Below are positions 11,171 to 64,000 of a DNA stretch of 64,000 nucleotides, in pieces. Both the position numbers and the translations under genes were made by a program. This stretch comes from Anthoceros angustus (taxonomy: Eukaryota; Plantae; Anthocerotophyta). Under the pieces are notes generated by a model, which searched no databases, was not told where the DNA came from, and saw nothing but the letters and a program-made list of their open reading frames with translations. The first letter of the stretch is position 1. Each line of letters opens with the position of its first letter. The stretch spans positions 124,001 through 188,000 of the forward strand of contig VJWM01000108.1 of assembly GCA_010909165.1 (NCBI GenBank). Reading direction: 5' to 3'.

Positions 11171-11871
11171 CGCTCCTGCCCTGCCCTCTCGCGCTGCCGG
11201 AGCCAAGTGACCGCAAGGAAGGGTATCACAGGGTTTAGGGTTCTAGAGGTCATTCATTCCAGTAGACGTTGTTGTGCGGTGCTCTCCGAACCATGCGAGA
11301 TAGTCACTATCACACGGCTCACCAACCCGAACTACCCTTATGAAACCCACCTAAGACCAATTGCCGCGCTCTGAGTTCTCTGGCGCAAGGTAATCTGTTT
11401 TCGACGCGCCGCCGATTCACACCAGCAGCCTTTCATATCGTTCAGTTGAATCACATCCTTCGGCCTGCGGTCTGAATTTGCAGCATAAAGCCTGCCGCCC
11501 GCGGCGGCCTCTTCACAGGGCCCTGCCGGAGCATAGAACTCCTATACAACTTTCTTCATGGATCTCCCTGATTATCTACTGGGTTGCAGTCTTCATATAG
11601 CGGTTTGACGGCGCTTTGTCGGACTCTGTGTCTTGGCTTACATGGCACATAAACTATGGCAGGGCCTTGCTAGATGAGAAGCAAGCTTGCGTCAAATAGT
11701 TATTGCATAATCTTCGCTAGCTGTGTTTTGGAAAAGCGCTCACCAGCCATAGCGAACATCTTCGTTCGGATGTCGCCCGCCGCCCGCCGGCCCAGTCTTA
11801 GAATGGTTGACCAGTCGCTCAGACATGCTTGCTTAGGGTTCGTGATGTGATAGTAGTTGGCCTGAATGTGT

Positions 11872-12190
11872 GTCCAAATGGCATAGGCCCAATGGACACA
11901 CATTTATAAGAACGTCGTGATTAAGCATCCTGAGCTTAGATCGATACTTAGATGGGGTGCCTGAGCTTAGATCGATACTTAGATGGGGTGCTTGAGCTTA
12001 GATCGATACTTAGATGGGGTGCTTGAGCTTAGATCGATACTTAGATGAGGTGCCTGAGCTTAGATCGATACTTAGATGGGGTCCCTAAAGGGAGTGGATG
12101 CCCTTGGTGCAAGTTGCTTAGGCACACATGGTACAAGTTGTTAAGTACCAAGTGTTCTTAGTGGACTTCAATAAAATTTTTCTTCTTCTT
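11872..12190 (+). mobile_element. 5S rRNA-derived SINE-like element, copy 1, with an internal 31-bp x5 array
   Basis: AGAAC/TTAAGC/TACT.AGATGGG motifs at 5S-like spacing; AATAAA plus (CTT)n tail; homologous to 28991-29190. Confidence 0.7.
11929..12083. repeat. 31-bp tandem repeat x5
   Basis: CCTGAGCTTAGATCGATACTTAGATGGGGTG x5 with 0-2 mismatches each. Confidence 0.95.
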
Positions 12191-12351
12191 CTGAAAGTTT
12201 TTCTTTTTAGGGTTTTAGGAAGAAAACCCTGAGGGCTGAGCCAGACGAAGAAAGGCCTCAGAGAAAGGACTAGAGAAAACGCTTAACTTGATGTCGATTG
12301 CACACACAGCTTGGCGGAGAGTAACTCGGTTTGAGGTGCTGCATTGCAGCA

Positions 12352-15300
12352 ATGGGGGAGCCGGTGGCGGAGGAGAGGGTCCACGTTTCGCTGATGCTTC
12401 CTCCGGAGATGTATCCCTCGGAAGAGGACTTTCTGTACGAGGAGGAGATTTTGAGGAATCCGTTCACCCTGAAGCTCTGGTGGCGGTATCTTCAGGCACG
12501 GAGGGAGGCTCCGTTCAAGAAGCGGGCTGTGCTGTTCGAGAGAGCGCTGAAGGCCCTGCCCGGGAGCTATAAGCTGTGGTATGCTTATTTGAGGGAGAGG
12601 ATGGAGGCTGTGCGCGGGCTGCCTCCCACGCACCAGCAGTACGACGCACTAAACAACACCTTCGAGAGGGCTATTGTGACGATGCACAAAATGCCGCGCA
12701 TTTGGGCTTTGTACCTCCAGATTTTGGTGGAGCAGAAGCTGGTCACCCGGACCCGGAGGACGTTTGACAGGGCTTTGTGCTCGCTGCCTGTGACGCAGCA
12801 TGACAGGATTTGGGAACCGTATCTGAAATTTGTGAGCCAGCAGGGTGTGCCGATTGAGACTTCTCTGCGTGTTTACAGGCGGTATTTGAAGTTCGATCCC
12901 AACCATGTGGAGGATTTCATAGAGTTTTTGGTGTCTGCGAAGAGGTGGCAGGAGGTAGCGGAGAAGTTGGCTCAGTGTTTGAATAATGAGACCTTTCAGT
13001 CTGTGAAAGGCAAAACCAGGCACCAGCTGTGGCTGGAGTTGTGCCACTTGCTCACCACCCATGCGCAAGATGTCTTAGGCTTGCCGGTTGATGCTATCAT
13101 TCGTGGTGGGATTCGCAAGTTCACTGATGAGGTAGGTCAACTTTGGACAGCTCTTGCAGACTACTACATCCGTAGAAGCTTTTTTGAGAAAGCCAGAGAT
13201 GTGTATGAAGAGGGAATGATGACTGTAATAACTGTGAGAGATTTCACTCTCATTTTTGATGCGTACACTCAATTTGAGGAGAGCATGCTGGCAGCCAGGA
13301 TGGAGACAATGGATGTGGGGGATGAGTTAGAAGAGAGGACTACTGTGGCATCGGAGGCAGACAGGGACTTTGAAAATAAGAAGGAAGGCACTACCCATAA
13401 CGGGGCTGATTCTCTTCCTTCAAAGAGTGGCCGGGCTGGTCTGAAAAATCGCTTTCAGAAATGGGAGCGTGAGCTTTTGTCAAACTTCTGGTTGAAGGAT
13501 GATGTCGATGTCGACTTAAGGCTCGCCAGGCTAGAACACTTGATGGATCGCCGGCCGGAACTGGTTAGCAGTGTTCTCCTCAGGCAAAATCCACACAATG
13601 TGCATGAATGGCATAAGAGAGCGAAGCTTTTCAAGGATAACCCAGCCAAGCAGATCCTTACATTCACGGAAGCTGTCAAGACGGTGGACCCATTTAAAGC
13701 TGTGGGCAAGCCACATACTCTATGGATGGCGTTTGCCCATTTGTATGAAGCCCACAACGATCTTCAGAATGTAAGGGTGATTTTTGATAAGGCCGTGCAG
13801 GTTAACTACAAGACGGTTGATGATCTGGCCACCTTGTGGTGTGACTGGGCAGAAACTGAACTGAGGCATAATAACTTCAAAGGTGCTCTGGATCTAATGA
13901 GACGTGCAACTGCTGAGCCCAATGCTGCAGTGAAGAGGAAAGGTAAGCACTTCTGGGCGGGTAGTCATGCACATGAACTTGGACATGAGGAGTTTGTATA
14001 TTGTTGTGTAATATGCCGTGTGCTTGTGGGCTGCTTACAGTTGCTGCAGATGGTGAAGAGCCAGTTCAGATGAAGCTCTTTAGGTCTTTGAAGCTGTGGA
14101 CATTCTACGTGGACCTTGAAGAGAGCCTTGGGACTTTGGAGTCGACTAGAGCTGTTTATGATAGAATATTAGATCTGCGGATTGCCACACCGCAAATCAT
14201 AATCAATTATGCTTTGCTGCTTGAGGTTTGGTTCAAATGTCCTTCATTCGTTACGTTCTTCTACTCCTGAAAGTTGTCAACGGGATTTGAGCTGACAATT
14301 ATTGTGTCCTTACATCAGGAGCATAAATATTTTGAAGATGCTTTTCGAGTTTATGAAAGAGGTGTGCAAGTATTCAAATACCCGCATGTTCGTGAGATTT
14401 GGGTCACATACTTGTCCAAGTTTACAAAGCGCTATGGTGGAAAGAAGCTAGAAAGGGCACGTGATTTGTTTGAGCAGGCTCTTGAAAAGGTAAACTTGTC
14501 TTGTGTGGTTAAGTGGTTCGGCTTTTGCAAAGTGGGTGAAGTGCTACGAGCTAACTCTTTTTGTGAACTTTTGTCAGGTCCCTGCAGAGGATGCAAAACC
14601 TCTGTATCTACAGTACGCAAAACTAGAAGAGGACTATGGTCTGGCTCGACATGCCATGACCGTATACGACCGGGCTACAAAGGCTGTCCCAGACACCGAG
14701 AAGATGAGCATCTATGAAATCTATATCTCAAGGGCAGCAGAGTTTTTAGGTGTCCCCAAGACGCGAGACATCTATGAGGTTTGACTACTTCCATTTGGCC
14801 CTCATTTGGGGAACTCTGGAAACACGCATTGCTTGAACTGCTGGTGATAAAAGCGTAGGCCTAGCCCTCGATTCCTAGTTGTATGATGTATCTAATACAC
14901 TAGTGATTTTGCAGCAAGCCATTGAGTCAGGGCTACCTGACAAGGATGTGAAGATCATGTGCCTAAAGTATGCAGAGCTTGAGCAAAATCTTGGCGAAAT
15001 AGATCGAGCTCGGGCCATTTACGTGCACGCATCACAGATGGCTGATCCAAGGTCAGATTCAGAGTTCTGGAACAAGTGGAATGATTTTGAAGTGGCACAT
15101 GGCAATGAGGACACGTTTAGAGAAATGCGGCGGATAAAGAGGAGTGTTACTGCCAGCTACAGTCAAGTAAGTCATTTGGTTGGCAAGTAATTTGACGGAG
15201 CTAGCTATCCACCTCTGTTGCTGGTGAAACGGTTGGAGTTTTTGCGCAGTATCTAATTTCCCCGTGGGACGTGAAACAGATGCACTTCATATTGCCGGAA

Positions 15301-24529: not shown

Positions 24530-27500
24530 TCAAAATTCCACCAGAAAAGTATGCACCATTCCGTCCATGTCTGTCCACCAGCTGTGGCCTGGCTGCTTCC
24601 ATGCTTTGATTCCTATTCGCCTCGCCTGCATCTCCTGTGCCTTCTCCCACATGTGTGCTTCGGTGTATATGTTCGACATCAACACATATGCGGCTGCATC
24701 CTGCTTGTCCAGCTTCACTGCTTCATGGAAGGCATGGTGTGCCACCTCCACGTTGTTCCACTTTCGACAAGCGCCCAATAGAGTGTGCCAAACTGCAGCA
24801 GTAGGTGGTACAGGTATGTTACCTACCAGAGCTAGTGACTCGTCCAGCCGGCCTGCACGACCCAGGAGATCCACCATGCATGTGTAGTGCTCCACGGTGG
24901 GAGTGATGCTATAGTGGTTGCTCATGGCCTCAAAGTACTGTCTCCCCTGGTCCACTAGACCCGCGTGACTGCACACTGTTAGTACATGAAGGAATGTAAT
25001 CCCGTCGGCCCGTATGCCGTCTTCTTTCATTCTCCGGACCAAGTCGAAGACCACGGCACTGTCTCCTTGTCGGGTGTATCCTGCAATCAGTGCATTCCAA
25101 GTGACACGGTCTCTTTCCGGCAATGCCTCGAACACTTGCTGTGCATCAATCATGCTCCCAGACTTCCCGTACATGTTTATCAAACTGTTGGCTACAAGTA
25201 CATCAGCTTGAAGCCGTTGTTCTTGAATCTGTGCATGCAGCTGCCTTCCCAAATGCAAAGCTGCCACATCTGCGCACGCCTGAAGGAGGCACACAAATGT
25301 CACAGCATCAGGTGCCACCGTGCCAGCTTCTTGCATCGCACTGTAGAGACGAAGAGCTTCCTGGACTGTGCCTTGCTGAGAATACCCTGCTATCATGCTA
25401 TTCCATGCCACCACATCCTTCCTACCAAGTTTGTCAAACACTCTGTGGGCGGTTTCCAAGCTGCCACACTTTGCATACATAGTTACCAAACTGCTGGCTA
25501 CAACTACATCGCCTTGAAGCCCTTGTTCCCTGATTCGTGCATGAAGTTCCTTCCCTTGCTGCAAAGCTGGAGTGCCCACACTCGCACATGCCTGCAGGAG
25601 GCACAAAAATGTCACAGAATCGGGTGCAGCCATGCCCTCTTCTTGCATATTGCTGTAAAGACAAAGGGCTTCTTGGCCCATGCCCTGCTGGGAATACCCT
25701 GCTATCATGGCATTCCACGTCACTACATTTTTGTGACCAAGTCCATCAAACACTCTGCGGGCATCTTCCAAGCTGCCACACTTTGCATACATGGCTATCA
25801 GACTGCTGGCCACAAACTCATCGCCTAAATGCCCTTGTTCTCTAATTTGTGCATGAAGCTGCTTCCCCTTCTCCAAAGACGAGTTACCCGAACTTGAACA
25901 TGCCTGGAGGAGGTACACGAACGTCTTTGGATCTGGTGTAGCCATGCCTTCTTCTTGCATAGTGCTGTAAAGAAAAAGTGCTTCCTGTCCCAAGCCCTGA
26001 TGGGAATAGCCTGCTATCATGGCATTCCAAGTCACCACATCTTTCTGCCTGATTTTGTCAAACACTCTTCTAGCGTCTTCTAAGCTGCCACACTTTGCAT
26101 ACATGTTTACCAAGTTTTTGCCTACAAATACATCAGTCTCATGTCCTCGGTCTGTAATTTGTGCATGAACTTGTGCCCCCTTCTCCAGTGCTGAAGTGCC
26201 CAAACTTCCACATGCCTGCAGGAGGCACACAAAAGTCAAGGAATTGGGAGCAACCGTGCCGTCGTCTTGCATAGAGCTGTAAAGACGAAGGGCTTTCTGG
26301 CCCATGCCCTGCTGGCAATACCCTGCAATAATGGCATTCCATGTCACCACATCTTTTCGAGCAAGTCTGTCGAACACTCTTTGGGCATCTTCCAAGCTGC
26401 CACACTTGGCATACATGTCTACCAAACTGCTGCATACAATCATGTTGCCCTCATGTCCTTCTTCTCTTATGTGTGCATGAAGCTGCCTCCCTTTCTCCAG
26501 GGCTGTGGTGCCCACACTGGCACATGCCTGCAGGAGACACACAAATGTCACGTAATCAGGTGCCGCCATGCCTTCTTCTTGCATTCTGCTGTAAAGAGTA
26601 ATGGCTTCCCTGCCCATGCCCTCCCGACAATATCCTGTGATCATAGCATTCCAGGTCACCACGTTTTTTTGGCCAAGTCCCTCAAATACTGCTCGAGCGT
26701 CTACCAAGCTGCCACACTTTGCATACATGTTCACCAGACTGTTGCCTATAAATACATCAGCTTCATGCTCTTGTCCTCTTATTTCTGCATGAAGCTCCTT
26801 TCCTTGCTCCAAAGCCGGGGTGCCCACAGTTGCACATGCAAGTAGGAGGCACACGAAGGTCACAGCATCGGGTGCAACCATGCCTCCCTCTTGCATAGCA
26901 CTGTAGAGACAAAGGGCTTCCCGGCCCATTCCCTGCTGGGAATACCCTGCTATCATGGCATTCCACGTGACTACATTCTTTTCACGAAGTCCTTCAAACA
27001 CTGTTCGAGCATCTTCCAAGCTGCCACACTTCGCATACATGTCCACCAAGGAACTAGAGACAAAGTAGCCAGGCTCAACGCCACTGGCCAACACATCAGC
27101 ATGCACCTGCTGTCCACTTTGTAAGTCTCCTCCCTTTGCACAAGCTTGAAGTGCTGCCACAAATACATGGCCATCTGGATTGGCACTAGACCTGCGCATC
27201 TGATGATACAGTTGTATGGCCTGCGTGTCTTGCCCGTGTCTACTATGTGCAGAGATTATGGAAGACCACATGAAGGCATCTGGTTTGCCAACGGCGGTGA
27301 ACACATCCATCGCTTCTTGTAACCTGCCATGAGAAGTGTACATTCGCAAGATGTGGTTGCACAAGAACGTATCAGATTGATACCCGTTTCTCACCGTGAA
27401 AGCATGCACACGGCGACTCAGAGCAAGATCTTTCTTGACTGAACATTTTTTGAGGACAGTCTGCAAGAGAGATATGGGAACACAACATTCTGTCTCCACC

Positions 27501-27547
27501 AGAACTCCTAACGCCTCCACAGACTGAGTGACATGCCCTGATGACAT
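24530..27547 (-). CDS. PLS-class PPR protein with E1/E2 domains, ending just after a PGxSWW box (organellar RNA-editing-type factor; no DYW deaminase domain)
   Basis: Intronless 1005-aa ORF; ~104-aa P-L-S triplets (LVDMYAKCGSLEDA, VVTWNAMIAGY, PD.VTFVCLLQAC); HYTCMVDLLGRAG; AAAYVLMSNIY; KQPGHSWWTD...VHTFLVEF*. Confidence 0.95.
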   Translation of the reverse strand: MSSGHVTQSVEALGVLVETECCVPISLLQTVLKKCSVKKDLALSRRVHAFTVRNGYQSDTFLCNHILRMYTSHGRLQEAMDVFTAVGKPDAFMWSSIISAHSRHGQDTQAIQLYHQMRRSSANPDGHVFVAALQACAKGGDLQSGQQVHADVLASGVEPGYFVSSSLVDMYAKCGSLEDARTVFEGLREKNVVTWNAMIAGYSQQGMGREALCLYSAMQEGGMVAPDAVTFVCLLLACATVGTPALEQGKELHAEIRGQEHEADVFIGNSLVNMYAKCGSLVDARAVFEGLGQKNVVTWNAMITGYCREGMGREAITLYSRMQEEGMAAPDYVTFVCLLQACASVGTTALEKGRQLHAHIREEGHEGNMIVCSSLVDMYAKCGSLEDAQRVFDRLARKDVVTWNAIIAGYCQQGMGQKALRLYSSMQDDGTVAPNSLTFVCLLQACGSLGTSALEKGAQVHAQITDRGHETDVFVGKNLVNMYAKCGSLEDARRVFDKIRQKDVVTWNAMIAGYSHQGLGQEALFLYSTMQEEGMATPDPKTFVYLLQACSSSGNSSLEKGKQLHAQIREQGHLGDEFVASSLIAMYAKCGSLEDARRVFDGLGHKNVVTWNAMIAGYSQQGMGQEALCLYSNMQEEGMAAPDSVTFLCLLQACASVGTPALQQGKELHARIREQGLQGDVVVASSLVTMYAKCGSLETAHRVFDKLGRKDVVAWNSMIAGYSQQGTVQEALRLYSAMQEAGTVAPDAVTFVCLLQACADVAALHLGRQLHAQIQEQRLQADVLVANSLINMYGKSGSMIDAQQVFEALPERDRVTWNALIAGYTRQGDSAVVFDLVRRMKEDGIRADGITFLHVLTVCSHAGLVDQGRQYFEAMSNHYSITPTVEHYTCMVDLLGRAGRLDESLALVGNIPVPPTAAVWHTLLGACRKWNNVEVAHHAFHEAVKLDKQDAAAYVLMSNIYTEAHMWEKAQEMQARRIGIKAWKQPGHSWWTDMDGMVHTFLVEF

Positions 27548-28990
27548 AGCTTGCTCACACTTTCAGCCGTTACGACCCTTTCGGACCCTGCAGGCCTGCC
27601 ACCATGACCGGGCAGGGATGATCGTGACTCTCTCTGGCAGGTCTTGACGAGCTGGGGTCTTTGAAAATTTGCTACTCCTCGCACCTTCATTGCTCAGCAA
27701 CTTCCACAATGACCTTCGTTTCCCAAGTGAGCTGAGCGGGAGCTCTTCCAAGACCAACCGTCAACCTCCACACAGCCATGGCTTGCGGTGGCGCAAGCAC
27801 ATTACGGGCAACAAGTTACCAGCAACATATGCCCTCCCATGGCCATACTGATGCGATGCTGTAGTGGCTGGAGCACTCATGGTGTGCCTACAGGGGGGAA
27901 GCAATCGTTGCTGCAGGACAGCTGAAATCGTGACCACACCATGTGAGCAGAAGAAGGTCGATGGTTCCATGAAGGATCTGGTTCTGGGCCGTCACAGCCA
28001 TGCTCTCATCATCACAAGAAGGTGTGGGTTATGCCACGTTGTGCATGCAAGGCGTGCTTCCTCAACAGGATGTGGTGACATAGATGGCTCTGATAGCAGA
28101 ATACTTCCAGCAGGACCATGGATCAGGGATCCCTTCATCTTCACAGTGCTGTGCAGCAAGAAGGCATCGCTGCCCCTCACTCTGTAACATTTGTGGAATG
28201 CGAAATGCAATGATAGCAGGAAATCTCCAGCAGAGAATATTGGGCCACGAAACCCTTCGTCAAAAGGAAGGGAATGTCCGCGAAACCTCCCCAGGGTTGG
28301 CCCCCGGTGTGCGCTCATGACTGGGAAGAGTCCAAAGACTCCGTGTCAACCGAAGCGACACTAAACCCCCCCGGCCTCCCCGGCCTGGTTGCCAATATCA
28401 GACCACGGCGCAACAAGCCCTGAAATTGCTCACATACAGTTAGGGACCCATCCGTGGCACCTTTGAAGAGCGGGGCACACAAGCTAGCGACCTCCCAAGA
28501 GATCGAGTCGGGCAGGAGGAGATTGTGAATGGTAGCCAGATTTGATGTCAGCAGCCCACAGCATTCACCAACCTGTTCACATACAGGCTTTGCTCATTGA
28601 GCTAGTCAGCTGAGAGAGTAGTGAAAGGGCCAGCACGAAACCGTGCAATTTCAGGATCCAGGGCCCCCTTCAGCTCCATGCACAGCATTTTGATGTCCAG
28701 ACACAGGCTACTCGCCCACCAACAAGCCTCTTCCTTTGAGTGCCGAGGAGAACGGGATGAAAGACCTCGTGTCTGCCAAGAAGCCTCCAGCAATTTGGAA
28801 ACTCATACAGATGCAGCTCAGATGGTAGAGCCTTGCTCAGACGGTAAGAGTTCCAGGGATCGATGCCCTACAATTCGACTTTTGGCACAGTTGCGTGAAG
28901 ATTTATTTTTAAAAATAATTTGGCGATGCAGTTGAAAATACGACAAAATAGCGGAAATAACCGACTACGGGACCCTGACTACGAAAGCCC

Positions 28991-29190
28991 AACCCTCACA
29001 TTTATAAGAACGTAGTGATTAAGCATCCTGAGCTTAGATCGGTACTTAGATGGGGTGCCTAAAGGGAGTGGATGCCCTTGGTGCAAGTAGCTTAGGCACA
29101 CCATGGTACAAGTTGTTAAGTACCAGATCCCATGACGGAAATCCGTCCTTCGTGGACTTAAATAAAATTCTTCTTCTTCTTCTTCCTCTC
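28991..29190 (+). mobile_element. 5S rRNA-derived SINE-like element, copy 2 (5'-truncated), with a 13-bp TSD
   Basis: ACTACGAAAGCCC at 28978-28990 and 29191-29203; AATAAAATT(CTT)n tail; 5S-like internal promoter motifs. Confidence 0.8.
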
Positions 29191-29239
29191 ACTACGAAAG
29201 CCCGACAAGGGTCCTACGAGATACTAAAGATGAGTGAGT

Positions 29240-29600
29240 ACAGATCATATACGTATGAGACCTGATCATATACGTATGAGACCTGCGAGACGATAACGAT
29301 CATATACCTGCGAGACGATAAACATCATATACCTGCGAGAGACGACAAACATCATATACCTGCGAGAGACGATAAACATCATATACCTGCGAGAGACGAT
29401 AAACATCATATTCCTGCGAGATATGATAGATCATATACCTCTGAGACATGATAGATCATATACTTGCGAGGCAATAAATATACCGGCGAGATAGTAAAGA
29501 TCATATACTTGTGAGGCAGTAAAGATCATGTACATGCGAGACAATGAGAAACATTTACCTATAAGACAAGATAGATCATATATCTACGAGGCAATAAAGA
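29240..29600. repeat. Degenerate ~21-26-bp tandem repeat array
   Basis: Units of (G)ATCATATACCTGCGAGA(GA)CGATAAA. Confidence 0.85.
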
Positions 29601-30029
29601 TCATTTGGGATGGGTGGCACCTCATCCTAGTAAAGATTCGATCTCCCCGAACGAGTTCCAATGAACTCATGACTATTGTGGAGTTAAAAATGATTTTAAA
29701 ACCAAAGATAAAGAGAGGAGATATTTGAGAACTGAAAAGGAGAAAAATGATGATTTAAAGATGATGGGAAAAAAACACCAATATAGTAGAACTTTGGAAA
29801 AGGTATTTTTAATGATTGAATGATGAAAAGAAGAAAACAGCGGAGCGGGGAGATTCATTTCTCACTAACATCATATCTTCAATAAATAAGAAAAGAACCA
29901 TGGAGATTCATTTTAAATACTAAAAGAAGATGTTGCAAATAACGATCTACTGCAAGGGAAATCGGCGCACCCATCAGCGAGAACTAAGTTTTGCAATTTT
30001 TTGTCGCTAGTTTTAATGACTCTGCCAAG

Positions 30030-55656: not shown

Positions 55657-55822
55657 TGCCATGCCGTGTGATACTAATCTCTGCACTTGGGATTAGTGTT
55701 TGATTAGCATTAATTAATCTAATTACTTATCTTCAAGTAAGTAATTAGTGTTCATTAATCTAAGGTGCTTATGTTAATTAAGCATTGATTAGTGTTAATT
55801 AAACATGGTTAGCAATAGCTAA

Positions 55823-58630
55823 GTGGATAAGCTCAAGTAATATGCTTTGGCATATTCCTTGCATATTATAGTGTATTCTTAGGATATTTCTGGCATATGC
55901 TGATGCCAATAGGATATCTTAGGAATATGCCGATGCCAGGGTCTAGTATATATAGACCCTTCCATTGAGGACAAGCTCAGATCATAGCTTGTCCTCTAGA
56001 TATGCAATGCAAGAGCGTTGTGAGGAGGCCAAAGCTATGACTCCGAGAGCGATGTGTGAGGAATTTGCGTGTTGTTCTCGTGGGGAGAGTGTGTTTGTGC
56101 CACGACGTGCGAGCTACTCCCTCCTGTTGTTACAAGCTATGATCTCGCTTGTGTACACTAGATAGGCGTGCTAGGCGATGCTAGGCGGTGCTAGGCGAGG
56201 CTAGGCTAGGCGATGCTAGGCGTGCTAGGCGAGGCGAGGCTAGGCGATGCTAGTGTGCAGGCGAGGCTAGGCGAGGCAAGGCCAAGGAGAGGCAAGGCGA
56301 GGCGAGGCAAGGCCAAGGAGGCGAGGCTAGGCGAGGCAAGAAGCCAAGGCCAAGGAGGAGGCGGAAGCCCAAGTCCAAGGCCAGAGGAGGCGAAGAAGCC
56401 CAAGTCCAAGGCCAAGGAGAGGAGGAAGAAGCCCAAGTCCAAGGCCAAGGAGAGGAGGCGAAGCCCAAGGCCAAGGAGAGGAGGCAAGAAGCCAAGTCCA
56501 AGGCCAAGGAGAGGAGGCGAAGAAGCCCAAGTCCAAGGCCAAGGAGAGGAGAGAAGAAGCCCAAGTCCAAGGCCAAGGAGGAGGCGAAGAAGCCCAAGTC
56601 CAAGGCCAAGGAGAGGAGGCAAGCCCAAGGCCAAGGAGGAGGCAAGAAGCCCATACCAAGGAGAGGAATGAGGCTCCAAGGGGCTGGCCTTTTAAGGCCA
56701 ACCAACCAAGGAGAAACAAGAGTATTTTACTCTTGGGCCCGGATTCCAAGGGATAAGGGAAGTGGATAAGCTCAAGTAATATGCTTTGGCATATTCCTTG
56801 CATATTATAGTGTATTCTTAGGATATTTCCTGGACATATCGATGCCAATAGGATATCTTAGGAATATGCCATGCCAGGGTCTAGTATATATAGACCTTCC
56901 ATTGAGGACAAGCTCAAATCATAGCTTGTCCTCTAGATGCAATGCAAGGCGTTGTGAGGAGGCCAAAGCTATGACTCAGAGCAATGTGTGAGGAATTTGC
57001 GTGTTGTTCTCGTGGGGAGAGTGTGTTTGTGCCACGACGTGCGAGCTACTCCTCCTGTTGTTACAAGCTATGATCTCGCTTGTGTACACTAGATAGGCGT
57101 GCTAGGCGATGCTAGTGTGATGCTAGGCGAGGCTAGGCTAGGCGATGCTAGGCGTGCTAGGCGAGGCTAGGCGATGCTAGTGTGCAGGCGAGGCTAGGCG
57201 AGGCAAGGCCAAGGAGAGGCCAAGGCGAGGCGAGGCAAGGCCAGGAGGCGAGGCTAGGCGAGGCAAGAAGCCAAGGCCAAGGAGGAGGCGGCCCAAGTCC
57301 AAGGCCAGAGGAGGCGAAGAAGCCCAAGTCCAAGGCCAAGGAGAGGAGGAAGAAGCCCAAGTCCAAGGCCAAGGAGAGGAGGCGAAGCCCAAGGCCAAGG
57401 AGAGGAGGCAAGAAGCAAGTCCAAGGCCAAGGAGAGGAGGCGAAGAAGCCCAAGTCCAAGGCCAAGGAGAGGAGAGAAGAAGCCCAAGTCCAAGGCCAAG
57501 GAGGAGGCGAAGAAGCCCAAGTCCAAGGCCAAGGAGAGGAGGCAAGCCCAAGGCCAAGGAGGCAAGAAGCCCATACCAAGGAGAGGAATGAGGCTCCAAG
57601 GGGCTGGCCTTTTAAGGCCAACCAACCAAGGAGAAACAAGAGTATTTTACTCTTGGGCCCGGATTCCAAGGGATAAGGGATAAGGGATAAGCTCAAGTAA
57701 TATGCTTTGGCATATTCCTTGCATATTATAGTGTATTCTTAGGATATCTTAGGAATATGCCGATGCCAATAGGATATCTTAGGAATATGCGCCAGTATAT
57801 ATAGACCTTCCATTGAGGACAAGCTCAAATCATAGCTTGTCCTCTAGATGCAATGCAAGGCGTTGTGAGGAGGCCAAAGCTATGACTCAGAGCAATGTGT
57901 GAGGAATTTGCGTGTTGTTCTCGTGGGGAGAGTGTGTTTGTGCCACGACGTGCGAGCTACTCCCTCCTGTTGTTACAAGCTATGATCTCGTGTGTACACT
58001 AGATAGGCCGTGCTAGGCGATGCTAGTGTGATGCTAGGCGTGCTAGGCGATGCTAGGCGTGCTAGGCGTGCTAGGCGAGGCTAGGCGATGCTAGTGTGCC
58101 CAAGGCTTGAGGCTAGGGAGAGGCCAAGGCCAAGGAGAGCCCAAGTCCAAGGCTTGAGGCCTAGGAGAGGCAAGGCCAAGAAGAGGCCCAAGTCCAAGGC
58201 TGAGCAAGCCCAAGGAGGAGGAGGCGAAGCCCAAGTCCAAGGCCGAGAGGAGGCGAAGCCCAGTCCAAGGCCAAGGAGGCAAGAAGCCCGAGTCCAAGGC
58301 GAGAGAGGCGAAGAAGCCCAAGTCCAAGGCCAAGGAGAGGAGGAGAAGAAGCCCAAGTCCAAGGCCAAGGAGAGGAGGCGAAGAAGCCCAAGTCCAAGGC
58401 CAAGGAGAGAAGAAGCCCAAGTCCAAGGCCAAGGAGAGGAGGAGAAGCCCAAGTCCAAGGCCAGGAGAGGAGAAGAAGCCCAAGTCCAAGGCCAAGGAGA
58501 GGAGGCGAAGAAGCCCATACCAAGGAGAGGAATGAGGCCTCCAAGGGGTTGGCCTTTTAAGGCCAACCAACCAAGGGAGAAACAAGAGTATTTTACTCTT
58601 GGGCCCGGATTCCAAGGGATAAGGGAAGAG
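55823..58630. repeat. ~930-bp unit x3 (LTR segment plus CTAGGCG and CCAAGG low-complexity tracts)
   Basis: GGATAAGCTCAAGTAATATGC recurs near 55825, 56764 and 57685. Confidence 0.88.
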
Positions 58631-58677
58631 TGGATAGGCATGGGTATGTCATCAGTCCATTTGATTTCACTTTCTGT

Positions 58678-58742
58678 CCAAAACTCCTAGCACCCCATCC
58701 AGGTACTGATCCACCCACGGGTGCTTAACTGGAGTTCTTATG
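58678..58742 (-). other. 5S rRNA-derived segment (A-box/IE/C-box-like)
   Basis: Reverse complement TAAGAACTCCAGTTAAGCACCCGTGGGTGGATCAGTACCTGGATGGGGTGCTAGGAG compared with plant 5S CAGAACTCCGCAGTTAAGCGTGCTTGGGCGAGAGTAGTACTAGGATGGGTGACC (from memory). Confidence 0.7.
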
Positions 58743-59148
58743 TCTTTGCTATCCAACTCACCCAGCTCACATTTTTGATCATAGCCTGCAGAGTATTTGT
58801 ATGCAATTTTAACATGCATAGATACTTAGAGGTTTCACTAATCACGATCTAAGATAGCGGGTGTGTTAACCTTGATTAAGGGTTTGATCTAGCCACTAAC
58901 CGCCTGGAGTGCATGCCCGACACACTCGATCCGGACGGAGCTACCAACCAGCAAGTCCATCGAGCGAATTCAAGTCCCGACCAAGAGGAGAAGTGCGAAC
59001 ACCTCGATTTTGGTACCGAAGGGCGGAGGAACCCAGACACAATCAACAATCTTTGAAGGATCTGTGAGTGGCAACACACAAGACACGTTAGTCTTTGCCG
59101 GACAACTCGGAAGCGACAGAGGAGGACTTGTCTCTTGGAGTCGCCAAG

Positions 59149-62449: not shown

Positions 62450-63749
62450 AGCAGCGGGTTCGGTGGGTGAAGGACATTCCAACACTCGCATCTCAACAGG
62501 AGAAGGCGAGTTTGGAGGGCAAGGAGAGTGAGCACATAGAGGAAGCGTGCAAGCCATCTGAGCCACAGCCACATGAGTGGTTAACAAGCACCGAGTTGAA
62601 GTGCAATCAATGGCGTCAGCTAAAAGAGTTGTCGGAGGCATCGCGACATGTGTTTGCTTTCACTCTTGTGGAGATGGGGAAGCACACCAAAGGGAAATTC
62701 CACATAGAACTAATCAAGGATGAACCAAGTGTTCGCAGGAGGCACAGCTCGAAGGCAAGAAAATGACGAGCAACCGGGGAGAGTAGTCCACATAGCAGGC
62801 CCATGAGGATGTCAAGACAAGCCTCCACTCATGGACAAGGTTCATAACCTCGACGACATTCCGAAGGAGATTGGTTTTGTGCACAATGCGCTACATGAGG
62901 TGCGTACGTGTGTAGTCCTACTAATGATAATGTTTTGACTTAGAGTCTCACATTATCGGGGGATTGGTTGCACCTATATATCTGCGTATTAGATTTGTTT
63001 GCTTGGTTGTTGGTCGAGTGCTTATATGAATTCAAGTGCTTACCTCGTGCGGCTGTCGCGTGTGATACTAATCTGCACTTGGGTTTAGTGTTTGATTAGC
63101 ATTAATTAATCTAATTACTTATCTTTAAGTAAGTAATTAGTGTTAATTAATCTAAGGTGCTTATGAATTCAAGTGCTTACCTCGTCGACGGTCATCTGTG
63201 ATACTAATCTGCACTTGGGTTTAGTGTTTGATTAGCATTAATTAATCTAATTACTTATCTTTAAGTAAGTAATTAGTGTTAATTAATCTAATGTGCTTAT
63301 GTTAATTAAGCATTGATTAGTGTTAATTAAACATGGTTAGTAATAGCTAAGTAGATAAGCTCAAGTAATATGCTTTGGCATATTCCTTGCATATTATAGT
63401 GTATTCTTAGGATATTTAGGATATCGATGCCAATAGGATATCTTAGGAATATGCCGATGCCAAGGGCTAGTATATATAGACCTTCCAATGAGGACAAGCT
63501 CAAATCATAGCTTGTCCTCTAGATATGCAATGCAAGGGTGTTCGAGGAGGCCAAAGCTATGACTCCGAGAGCAATGTGTGAGGAATTTGCGGGTTGTTCT
63601 CGTGGGGAGAGTGTGTTTGTGCCACGATGTGCGAGCTACTCCCTCCTATTGTTACAAGCTGCATATATATATCTGCGTATTAGATTTGTTTGGTTGGTTG
63701 TTGGTCGAGGAAGTGCTTATATGAATTCAAGTACTTACCTCGTGCGACA

Positions 63750-64000
63750 GAGTCGTCTGCAAGTGATAGAAAGTGACCTTATCTCTAGGCCGAAGGATGT
63801 GAGAATCGTCTACAAGTGACAGAAAGTGACCTTATCTCGAGGCCCAAGGATGTGAGAATCGTCTGCAAGCGATGAAAAGTGACCTTATCTCGAGGCCCAA
63901 GGATGTGAGAGTCGTCTGGAAGTGACCAAAAGACGTAGTCGCAAGCAGTGGAAGCTGGCCTGGATAGGGCCTTGTAGTGGGCGATACCAAATAGAGCGTC
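63750..64000 (-). mobile_element. Right arm of the 53-bp minisatellite plus upstream CRE-like RT coding sequence
   Basis: About 4 more 53-bp units; reverse complement of the window end reads DALFGIAHYKAL...FWSLPDDSHILGPRDK. Confidence 0.78.

Follow-up and report, generated by a model that had tools for sequence, protein, structure and literature searches.

SINEs of plants have been described as tRNA-derived (SINE2), for example the p-SINE, TS, and Au families. These elements are small, are flanked by TSDs, end in a simple-repeat or A/T-rich tail, and lie near genes. The 5S-derived SINEs form another kind, SINE3, exemplified by zebrafish SINE3, AmnSINE1, lepidopteran HaSE3, bat MEG, and springhare Ped-1. 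They are short and non-coding, and carry an internal promoter of the 5S type, with box A, IE, and box C, at the 5' end. In the heads of SINE3 and of Ajax, an element of nemerteans, it is mainly the promoter blocks that are conserved, whereas their flanks have diverged (PMC10886601). In Ajax and in the plant Cassandra TRIM, the 5S part is limited to the promoter core, which presumably recruits Pol III. Both belong to the LTR elements and have paired LTRs, PBS/PPT, and 5-bp TSDs. The origin of Cassandra has been attributed to the hypothetical insertion of a SINE3 into an LTR (PMC10886601). The SINE3 kind is known, and the plant kingdom is where none has been described. According to a 2024 MBE review, 5S-derived SINEs are unknown in plants, and literature on SINE3 and plants, and on hornworts and SINEs, yielded no report of one. 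In this respect, the literature agrees with an initial sequence-only reading of the locus.

Here we describe two dispersed copies of a short, non-coding, non-autonomous element in a 64-kb stretch of DNA, hereafter the window. Like SINE3 elements, it has a TSD and a LINE-type tail, and its resemblance to 5S is concentrated in the promoter blocks, with divergent flanks. It differs from them in its host, which is a land plant, in its tail, which is (CTT)n instead of A-rich or of the animal LINE type, and in the 5' hairpin of the full-length copy. With Cassandra and Ajax it shares the restriction to the 5S promoter core, but it bears the marks of target-primed insertion. Its size, TSD, simple-repeat tail, and proximity to genes are similar to those of plant SINE2 families, but it lacks both the A/B box pair and the tRNA-like fold.

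Insertion anatomy of the two copies

The copy that defines the insertion (copy 1) has the following features.

28978 to 28990, + strand: 5' TSD of copy 1, ACTACGAAAGCCC; its last 4 nt, GCCC, are also those of the family sequence where copy 1 is truncated
28991 to 29190, + strand: SINE copy 1, 200 bp, 5'-truncated by ~23 nt relative to copy 2, no internal T4 run
29004 to 29058, + strand: 5S ICR-like head of copy 1, with a box A-like core (TTAAGC), an IE-like segment, and a box C-like segment (TACTTAGATGGGGTG)
29161 to 29190, + strand: 3' end of copy 1, consisting of AATAAAATT, (CTT)5, and CCTCTC; simple-repeat tail
29191 to 29203, + strand: 3' TSD of copy 1, ACTACGAAAGCCC, an exact sequence match

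Within the 64 kb, the 13-mer ACTACGAAAGCCC is present at the two junctions of copy 1 and nowhere else. The chance expectation for such a match is 0.03, even with one mismatch tolerated. The sequence-only reading had described a 200-bp element between perfect 13-bp TSDs, ending in (CTT)5 after AATAAAATT, and both parts of this description hold. In particular, AATAAAATT occupies 29161–29169, (CTT)5 occupies 29170–29184, and CCTCTC follows at 29185–29190. An AATAAA-(TTC)n tail is visible in the SINE family here. The termini of copy 1 are AA...TC, and a motif scan finds no internal T4+ terminator. The sole open frame through the element has no relatives in a peptide search; the only return from a second search with a SINE-derived peptide, a Bartonella YadA-like adhesin, is spurious.

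The second copy (copy 2) is longer.

11862 to 11869, + strand: candidate 5' TSD of copy 2, CTGAATGT, which agrees at 7/8 positions with its partner CTGAAAGT at 12191–12198
11868 to 11902, + strand: 5' hairpin of the full-length element in copy 2, GTGTGTCCA ... TGGACACAC
about 11870 to 12190, + strand: SINE copy 2, probably full length at its 5' end (±3 nt)
11906 to 11960, + strand: 5S ICR-like head of copy 2; AGAAC at +40, TTAAGC at +52, and TACT at +76, numbered from 11870
11929 to 12086, + strand: internal tandem array of copy 2, a 31-nt unit repeated 5.1 times with 96% matches, comprising the IE/box C-like segment

This copy, which the sequence-only reading had placed at 11872–12190, is real; we place its start at about 11870. 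When the tandem array of copy 2 is collapsed, copies 1 and 2 are 92% identical over 174 aligned columns. The similarity ends at the boundaries of the element, and the flanks are unrelated. Indels of a subfamily-like kind distinguish the two copies, which have the 3' region and the microsatellite tail in common; the 3' region of copy 1 contains 16 nt that are extra relative to copy 2, and a T5 run immediately precedes the tail of copy 2. The array of copy 2, five tandem IE/box C-like 31-mers, may represent a multiplied promoter element.

The 5' end of copy 2 extends ~23 nt beyond that of copy 1 and includes the hairpin. Copy 1 is therefore read as 5'-truncated, as had been proposed, and a 4-nt microhomology (GCCC) is present at its truncation junction. 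The pairing of CTGAATGT with CTGAAAGT is weak taken alone (chance ~0.09, by our estimate), and the 5' end of copy 2 is therefore uncertain by about 3 nt.

The long exact TSD, the microsatellite tail, the 5' truncation with microhomology, and the dispersed copies point to LINE-mediated, target-primed insertion. Copy 1 is very probably a real and young SINE insertion. The same anatomy bears on whether the element could instead be a Cassandra-type TRIM LTR, either a solo LTR or a fragment, with a 5S-like segment. In plants, the known carrier of 5S sequence is Cassandra, whose likeness to 5S is also confined to the promoter core. However, the two copies found here are separated by 17 kb of gene-containing DNA, form no LTR pair, and have no PBS/PPT context. 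They end in AA...TC instead of TG...CA, and the TSD is 13 bp instead of 5 bp. In addition, the microsatellite tail is positioned at the end of the element, and the 5S-like block is positioned at the 5' end instead of in the middle of an LTR. A Cassandra-type origin is thus highly improbable, and the preference of the sequence-only reading for a target-primed SINE is borne out.

A tRNA-derived SINE is also rejected. ARAGORN calls no tRNA in the element and returns only noise at relaxed settings, there is no B box resembling GTTCRA or GGTTCGA, and Rfam gives no tRNA match. Alternatively, the copies could be retro-pseudogenes of a cellular small RNA, transcribed by Pol III and not annotated, that a LINE occasionally copies, with no dedicated SINE family involved. 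The window contains only two copies, both near gene 5' ends, as such an origin would allow. Against it stand the subfamily-like indels, and the LINE-style 3' region and microsatellite tail that both copies have in common. Moreover, the RNA fold of the whole element is no better than that of shuffled sequences (z −0.8), and no Rfam family matches it. We consider a small-RNA retro-pseudogene improbable, and retain the reading of the copies as members of a SINE family.

No LINE or other sequence sharing the 3' region of the SINE is found in the 64 kb (blastn with word size 7, nhmmer). Exact-pattern scans of public metagenome, genome, and viral contigs (two each) return zero SINE matches, and two Logan contigs from SRR33208241 (21 kb, a distant relative) contain no SINE copy.

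Both copies lie close to the 5' ends of genes, and the two genes are located in the 17 kb between the copies.

12331 to 14073, + strand: long exon of SYF1 (splicing factor), directly downstream of copy 2
24530 to 27547, − strand: intronless E-motif PPR gene, 1005 aa

A distance of ~140 bp separates copy 2 from the downstream SYF1 open reading frame, and copy 1 is ~1.4 kb upstream of the PPR gene. The closest relatives of the two proteins in the protein collection belong to land plants, namely mosses, lycophytes, and ferns (56% identity for PPR, 73% for SYF1), and the PPR protein itself has no entry there. The host is accordingly a land plant that has no near relatives in this collection. Eight further ORFs in the window have no Pfam domain.

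The surroundings of copy 1 contain other features. A tandem array with a unit of 25–27 bp (29281–29604, ~13 copies, 76–88% matches) begins ~80 bp downstream of the copy. About 120 bp upstream, at 28810–28872 (+), a tRNA-like fragment can be recognized by eye, with a D-arm-like GCTCAGATGGTAGAGC and a T-arm-like GGGATCGATGCCC followed by CTTTT; it is called by neither ARAGORN nor Rfam. The opposite strand has a box C-like motif, TACTAGGATGAGGTGC, at a distance of 420 bp from copy 1 and preceded by GAACTCG (29617–29632, −). Its alignment with 5S is gapped and near background, and the motif may be a decayed head or a chance occurrence.

Comparison of the head with the 5S rRNA gene

The sequence-only reading had attributed a 5S promoter to a head of the form AGAAC..TTAAGC..TACTTAGATGGGGTG. 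This head is present in copy 1 at 29007–29057. As a reference, we used plant 5S oligonucleotides with gene coordinates (PMC5974128), which come from angiosperms and not from the 5S gene of the species itself. Positions 37–87 of 5S align with each SINE copy without gaps and with 32/51 matches. The gapless background, taken over ~128,000 positions of the window, has a mean of 12.7, an SD of 3.1, and a maximum of 26/51, which places the SINE match 6 SD above it. The binomial expectation of a 32/51 match is 0.0017 per window, for a 51-nt range that was picked after the alignment had been inspected.

The spacing of the motifs also corresponds to that of 5S. In copy 2, the first bases of AGAAC, TTAAGC, and TACT fall at +40, +52, and +76, and the same numbers apply in the 5S gene (angiosperm oligonucleotide numbering). 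Box A, IE, and box C are thus found in 5S order and with 5S spacing, as in the SINE3 class. A type-1 promoter sets the start site by distance. Therefore, the +40/+52/+76 register is one that a type-1 promoter would require.

The similarity is modest in other respects. The identity of the head to 5S is only 57–63%, with ~9/15 matches in box A and 3/6 in the IE (base count by hand). Stringent local alignment to the 5S ICR (+2/−3) leaves the head at background level. No convincing 5S similarity is found outside the ICR, either in the first 36 nt or after box C. The Rfam 5S model RF00001, which the sequence-only reading had named as a check, gives no match in the whole window at the gathering score and none at E ≤ 10 in four sub-regions (700-nt and 100-nt inputs). 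The SINE is neither a 5S gene nor a full 5S pseudogene. The claimed promoter match is supported at the level of sequence and spacing, and gains no support from RF00001.

These observations raise the question of whether the element is a genuine SINE whose head is not from 5S rDNA, in which case the resemblance would have arisen by chance or by convergence, and any promoter would be of other origin. The missing Rfam match, the background-level stringent score, the identity of ~60%, and the absence of convincing similarity in the first 36 nt and beyond box C are in line with such a head. By extrapolation, the per-window expectation would also yield a few equally strong chance matches in a genome of several hundred Mb. 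On the other hand, a 51-nt gapless match 6 SD above the window background, lying at the exact 5S distances from the 5' end, argues against a chance resemblance. Furthermore, no Rfam family of any other kind accounts for the head, and no alternative promoter motif is found in it.

A 5S-like fragment at 58.7 kb

A further sequence in the window bears on the same question.

58689 to 58748, − strand: solitary third 5S-like fragment; nothing else in the window matches 5S as well, and its similarity to the SINE head is significant

The fragment corresponds to approximately positions 36–90 of 5S, with 74% identity (z 9–13, angiosperm 5S oligonucleotides). When the window is scanned by permissive gapped scoring, it ranks first among ~5,100 tiles, followed by copies 1 and 2 at ranks 2 and 3; the background matches need several gaps and look random. 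In an nhmmer search with a profile built from the two SINE copies, the fragment is matched with an E value of 0.003, exactly over the ICR part. In a three-way alignment of 5S, the fragment, and the SINE, all three sequences have the same base in 27 columns. In 12 columns the fragment sides with 5S alone and in 9 with the SINE alone, and in 4 the SINE sides with 5S alone. The fragment is thus intermediate between 5S and the SINE, which fits descent of the SINE head from a 5S-derived sequence. It is single-copy within the window and is followed by TTTT. Possible identities are an old 5S-derived retroposon head and a piece of a 5S pseudogene.

RF00001 also fails to detect this fragment, although it is clearly 5S-like in sequence. 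The silence of Rfam on the SINE head therefore carries little weight, and the model appears to be powerless for pieces that comprise only the promoter and do not have the fold of 5S. Both the intermediate position of the fragment and the failure of the model to find it count against a head of non-5S origin, which we regard as unlikely, though considerably less so than the Cassandra-type and small-RNA origins. The head of the SINE is probably a diverged 5S type-1 promoter, to judge from its sequence and geometry.

The fragment lies ~50 bp outside an array of repeats. At 55680–58640, units of ~925 bp are arranged three in tandem, and partial copies with 96–97% identity occur at 63208–63965, 7.5 kb downstream. 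Each unit contains a TATATATA motif and GC-rich sub-repeats of 33–35 bp. No Pfam domain is found in the local ORFs tested at these repeats, which resemble an LTR-type element in which some parts have been amplified in tandem.

Proposed origin and significance

The explanation that best accounts for the observations together, and that we consider reasonably likely as a whole, is a young, 5'-truncated SINE that has a head of the 5S-ICR type and was copied by a LINE; Pol III transcription, the use of TFIIIA, and a LINE partner are what we infer from it. In this model, the first ~90 nt of a full-length member would keep the order, the spacing, and the 5' distance of the 5S ICR (box A, intermediate element, and box C), and the sequence outside the ICR blocks would have diverged from 5S past recognition. 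TFIIIA, TFIIIC, and TFIIIB would assemble on the type-1 promoter of the SINE. RNA polymerase III would start ~50 nt upstream of box A and continue until it meets a T run, either in the tail or past it. A LINE protein would recognize the 3' region together with the tail, and the LINE endonuclease/reverse transcriptase would insert the SINE by target-primed reverse transcription, which would account for the 13-bp TSD and the (CTT)n tail.

Since the copies lie near gene 5' ends, the SINE family may also influence the regulation of nearby genes. In a wider context, we see an evenly balanced case for a SINE family that has a 5S promoter and was recently active in a land plant of bryophyte grade. 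This family would be the first of the SINE3 type in plants and maybe a living counterpart of the SINE3-like progenitor proposed for the 5S segment of Cassandra. If plants do have a SINE with a type-1 Pol III promoter, the proposed origin of Cassandra would become testable by direct sequence comparison. Such an element would also provide a natural reporter of TFIIIA-dependent transcription outside the 5S arrays.
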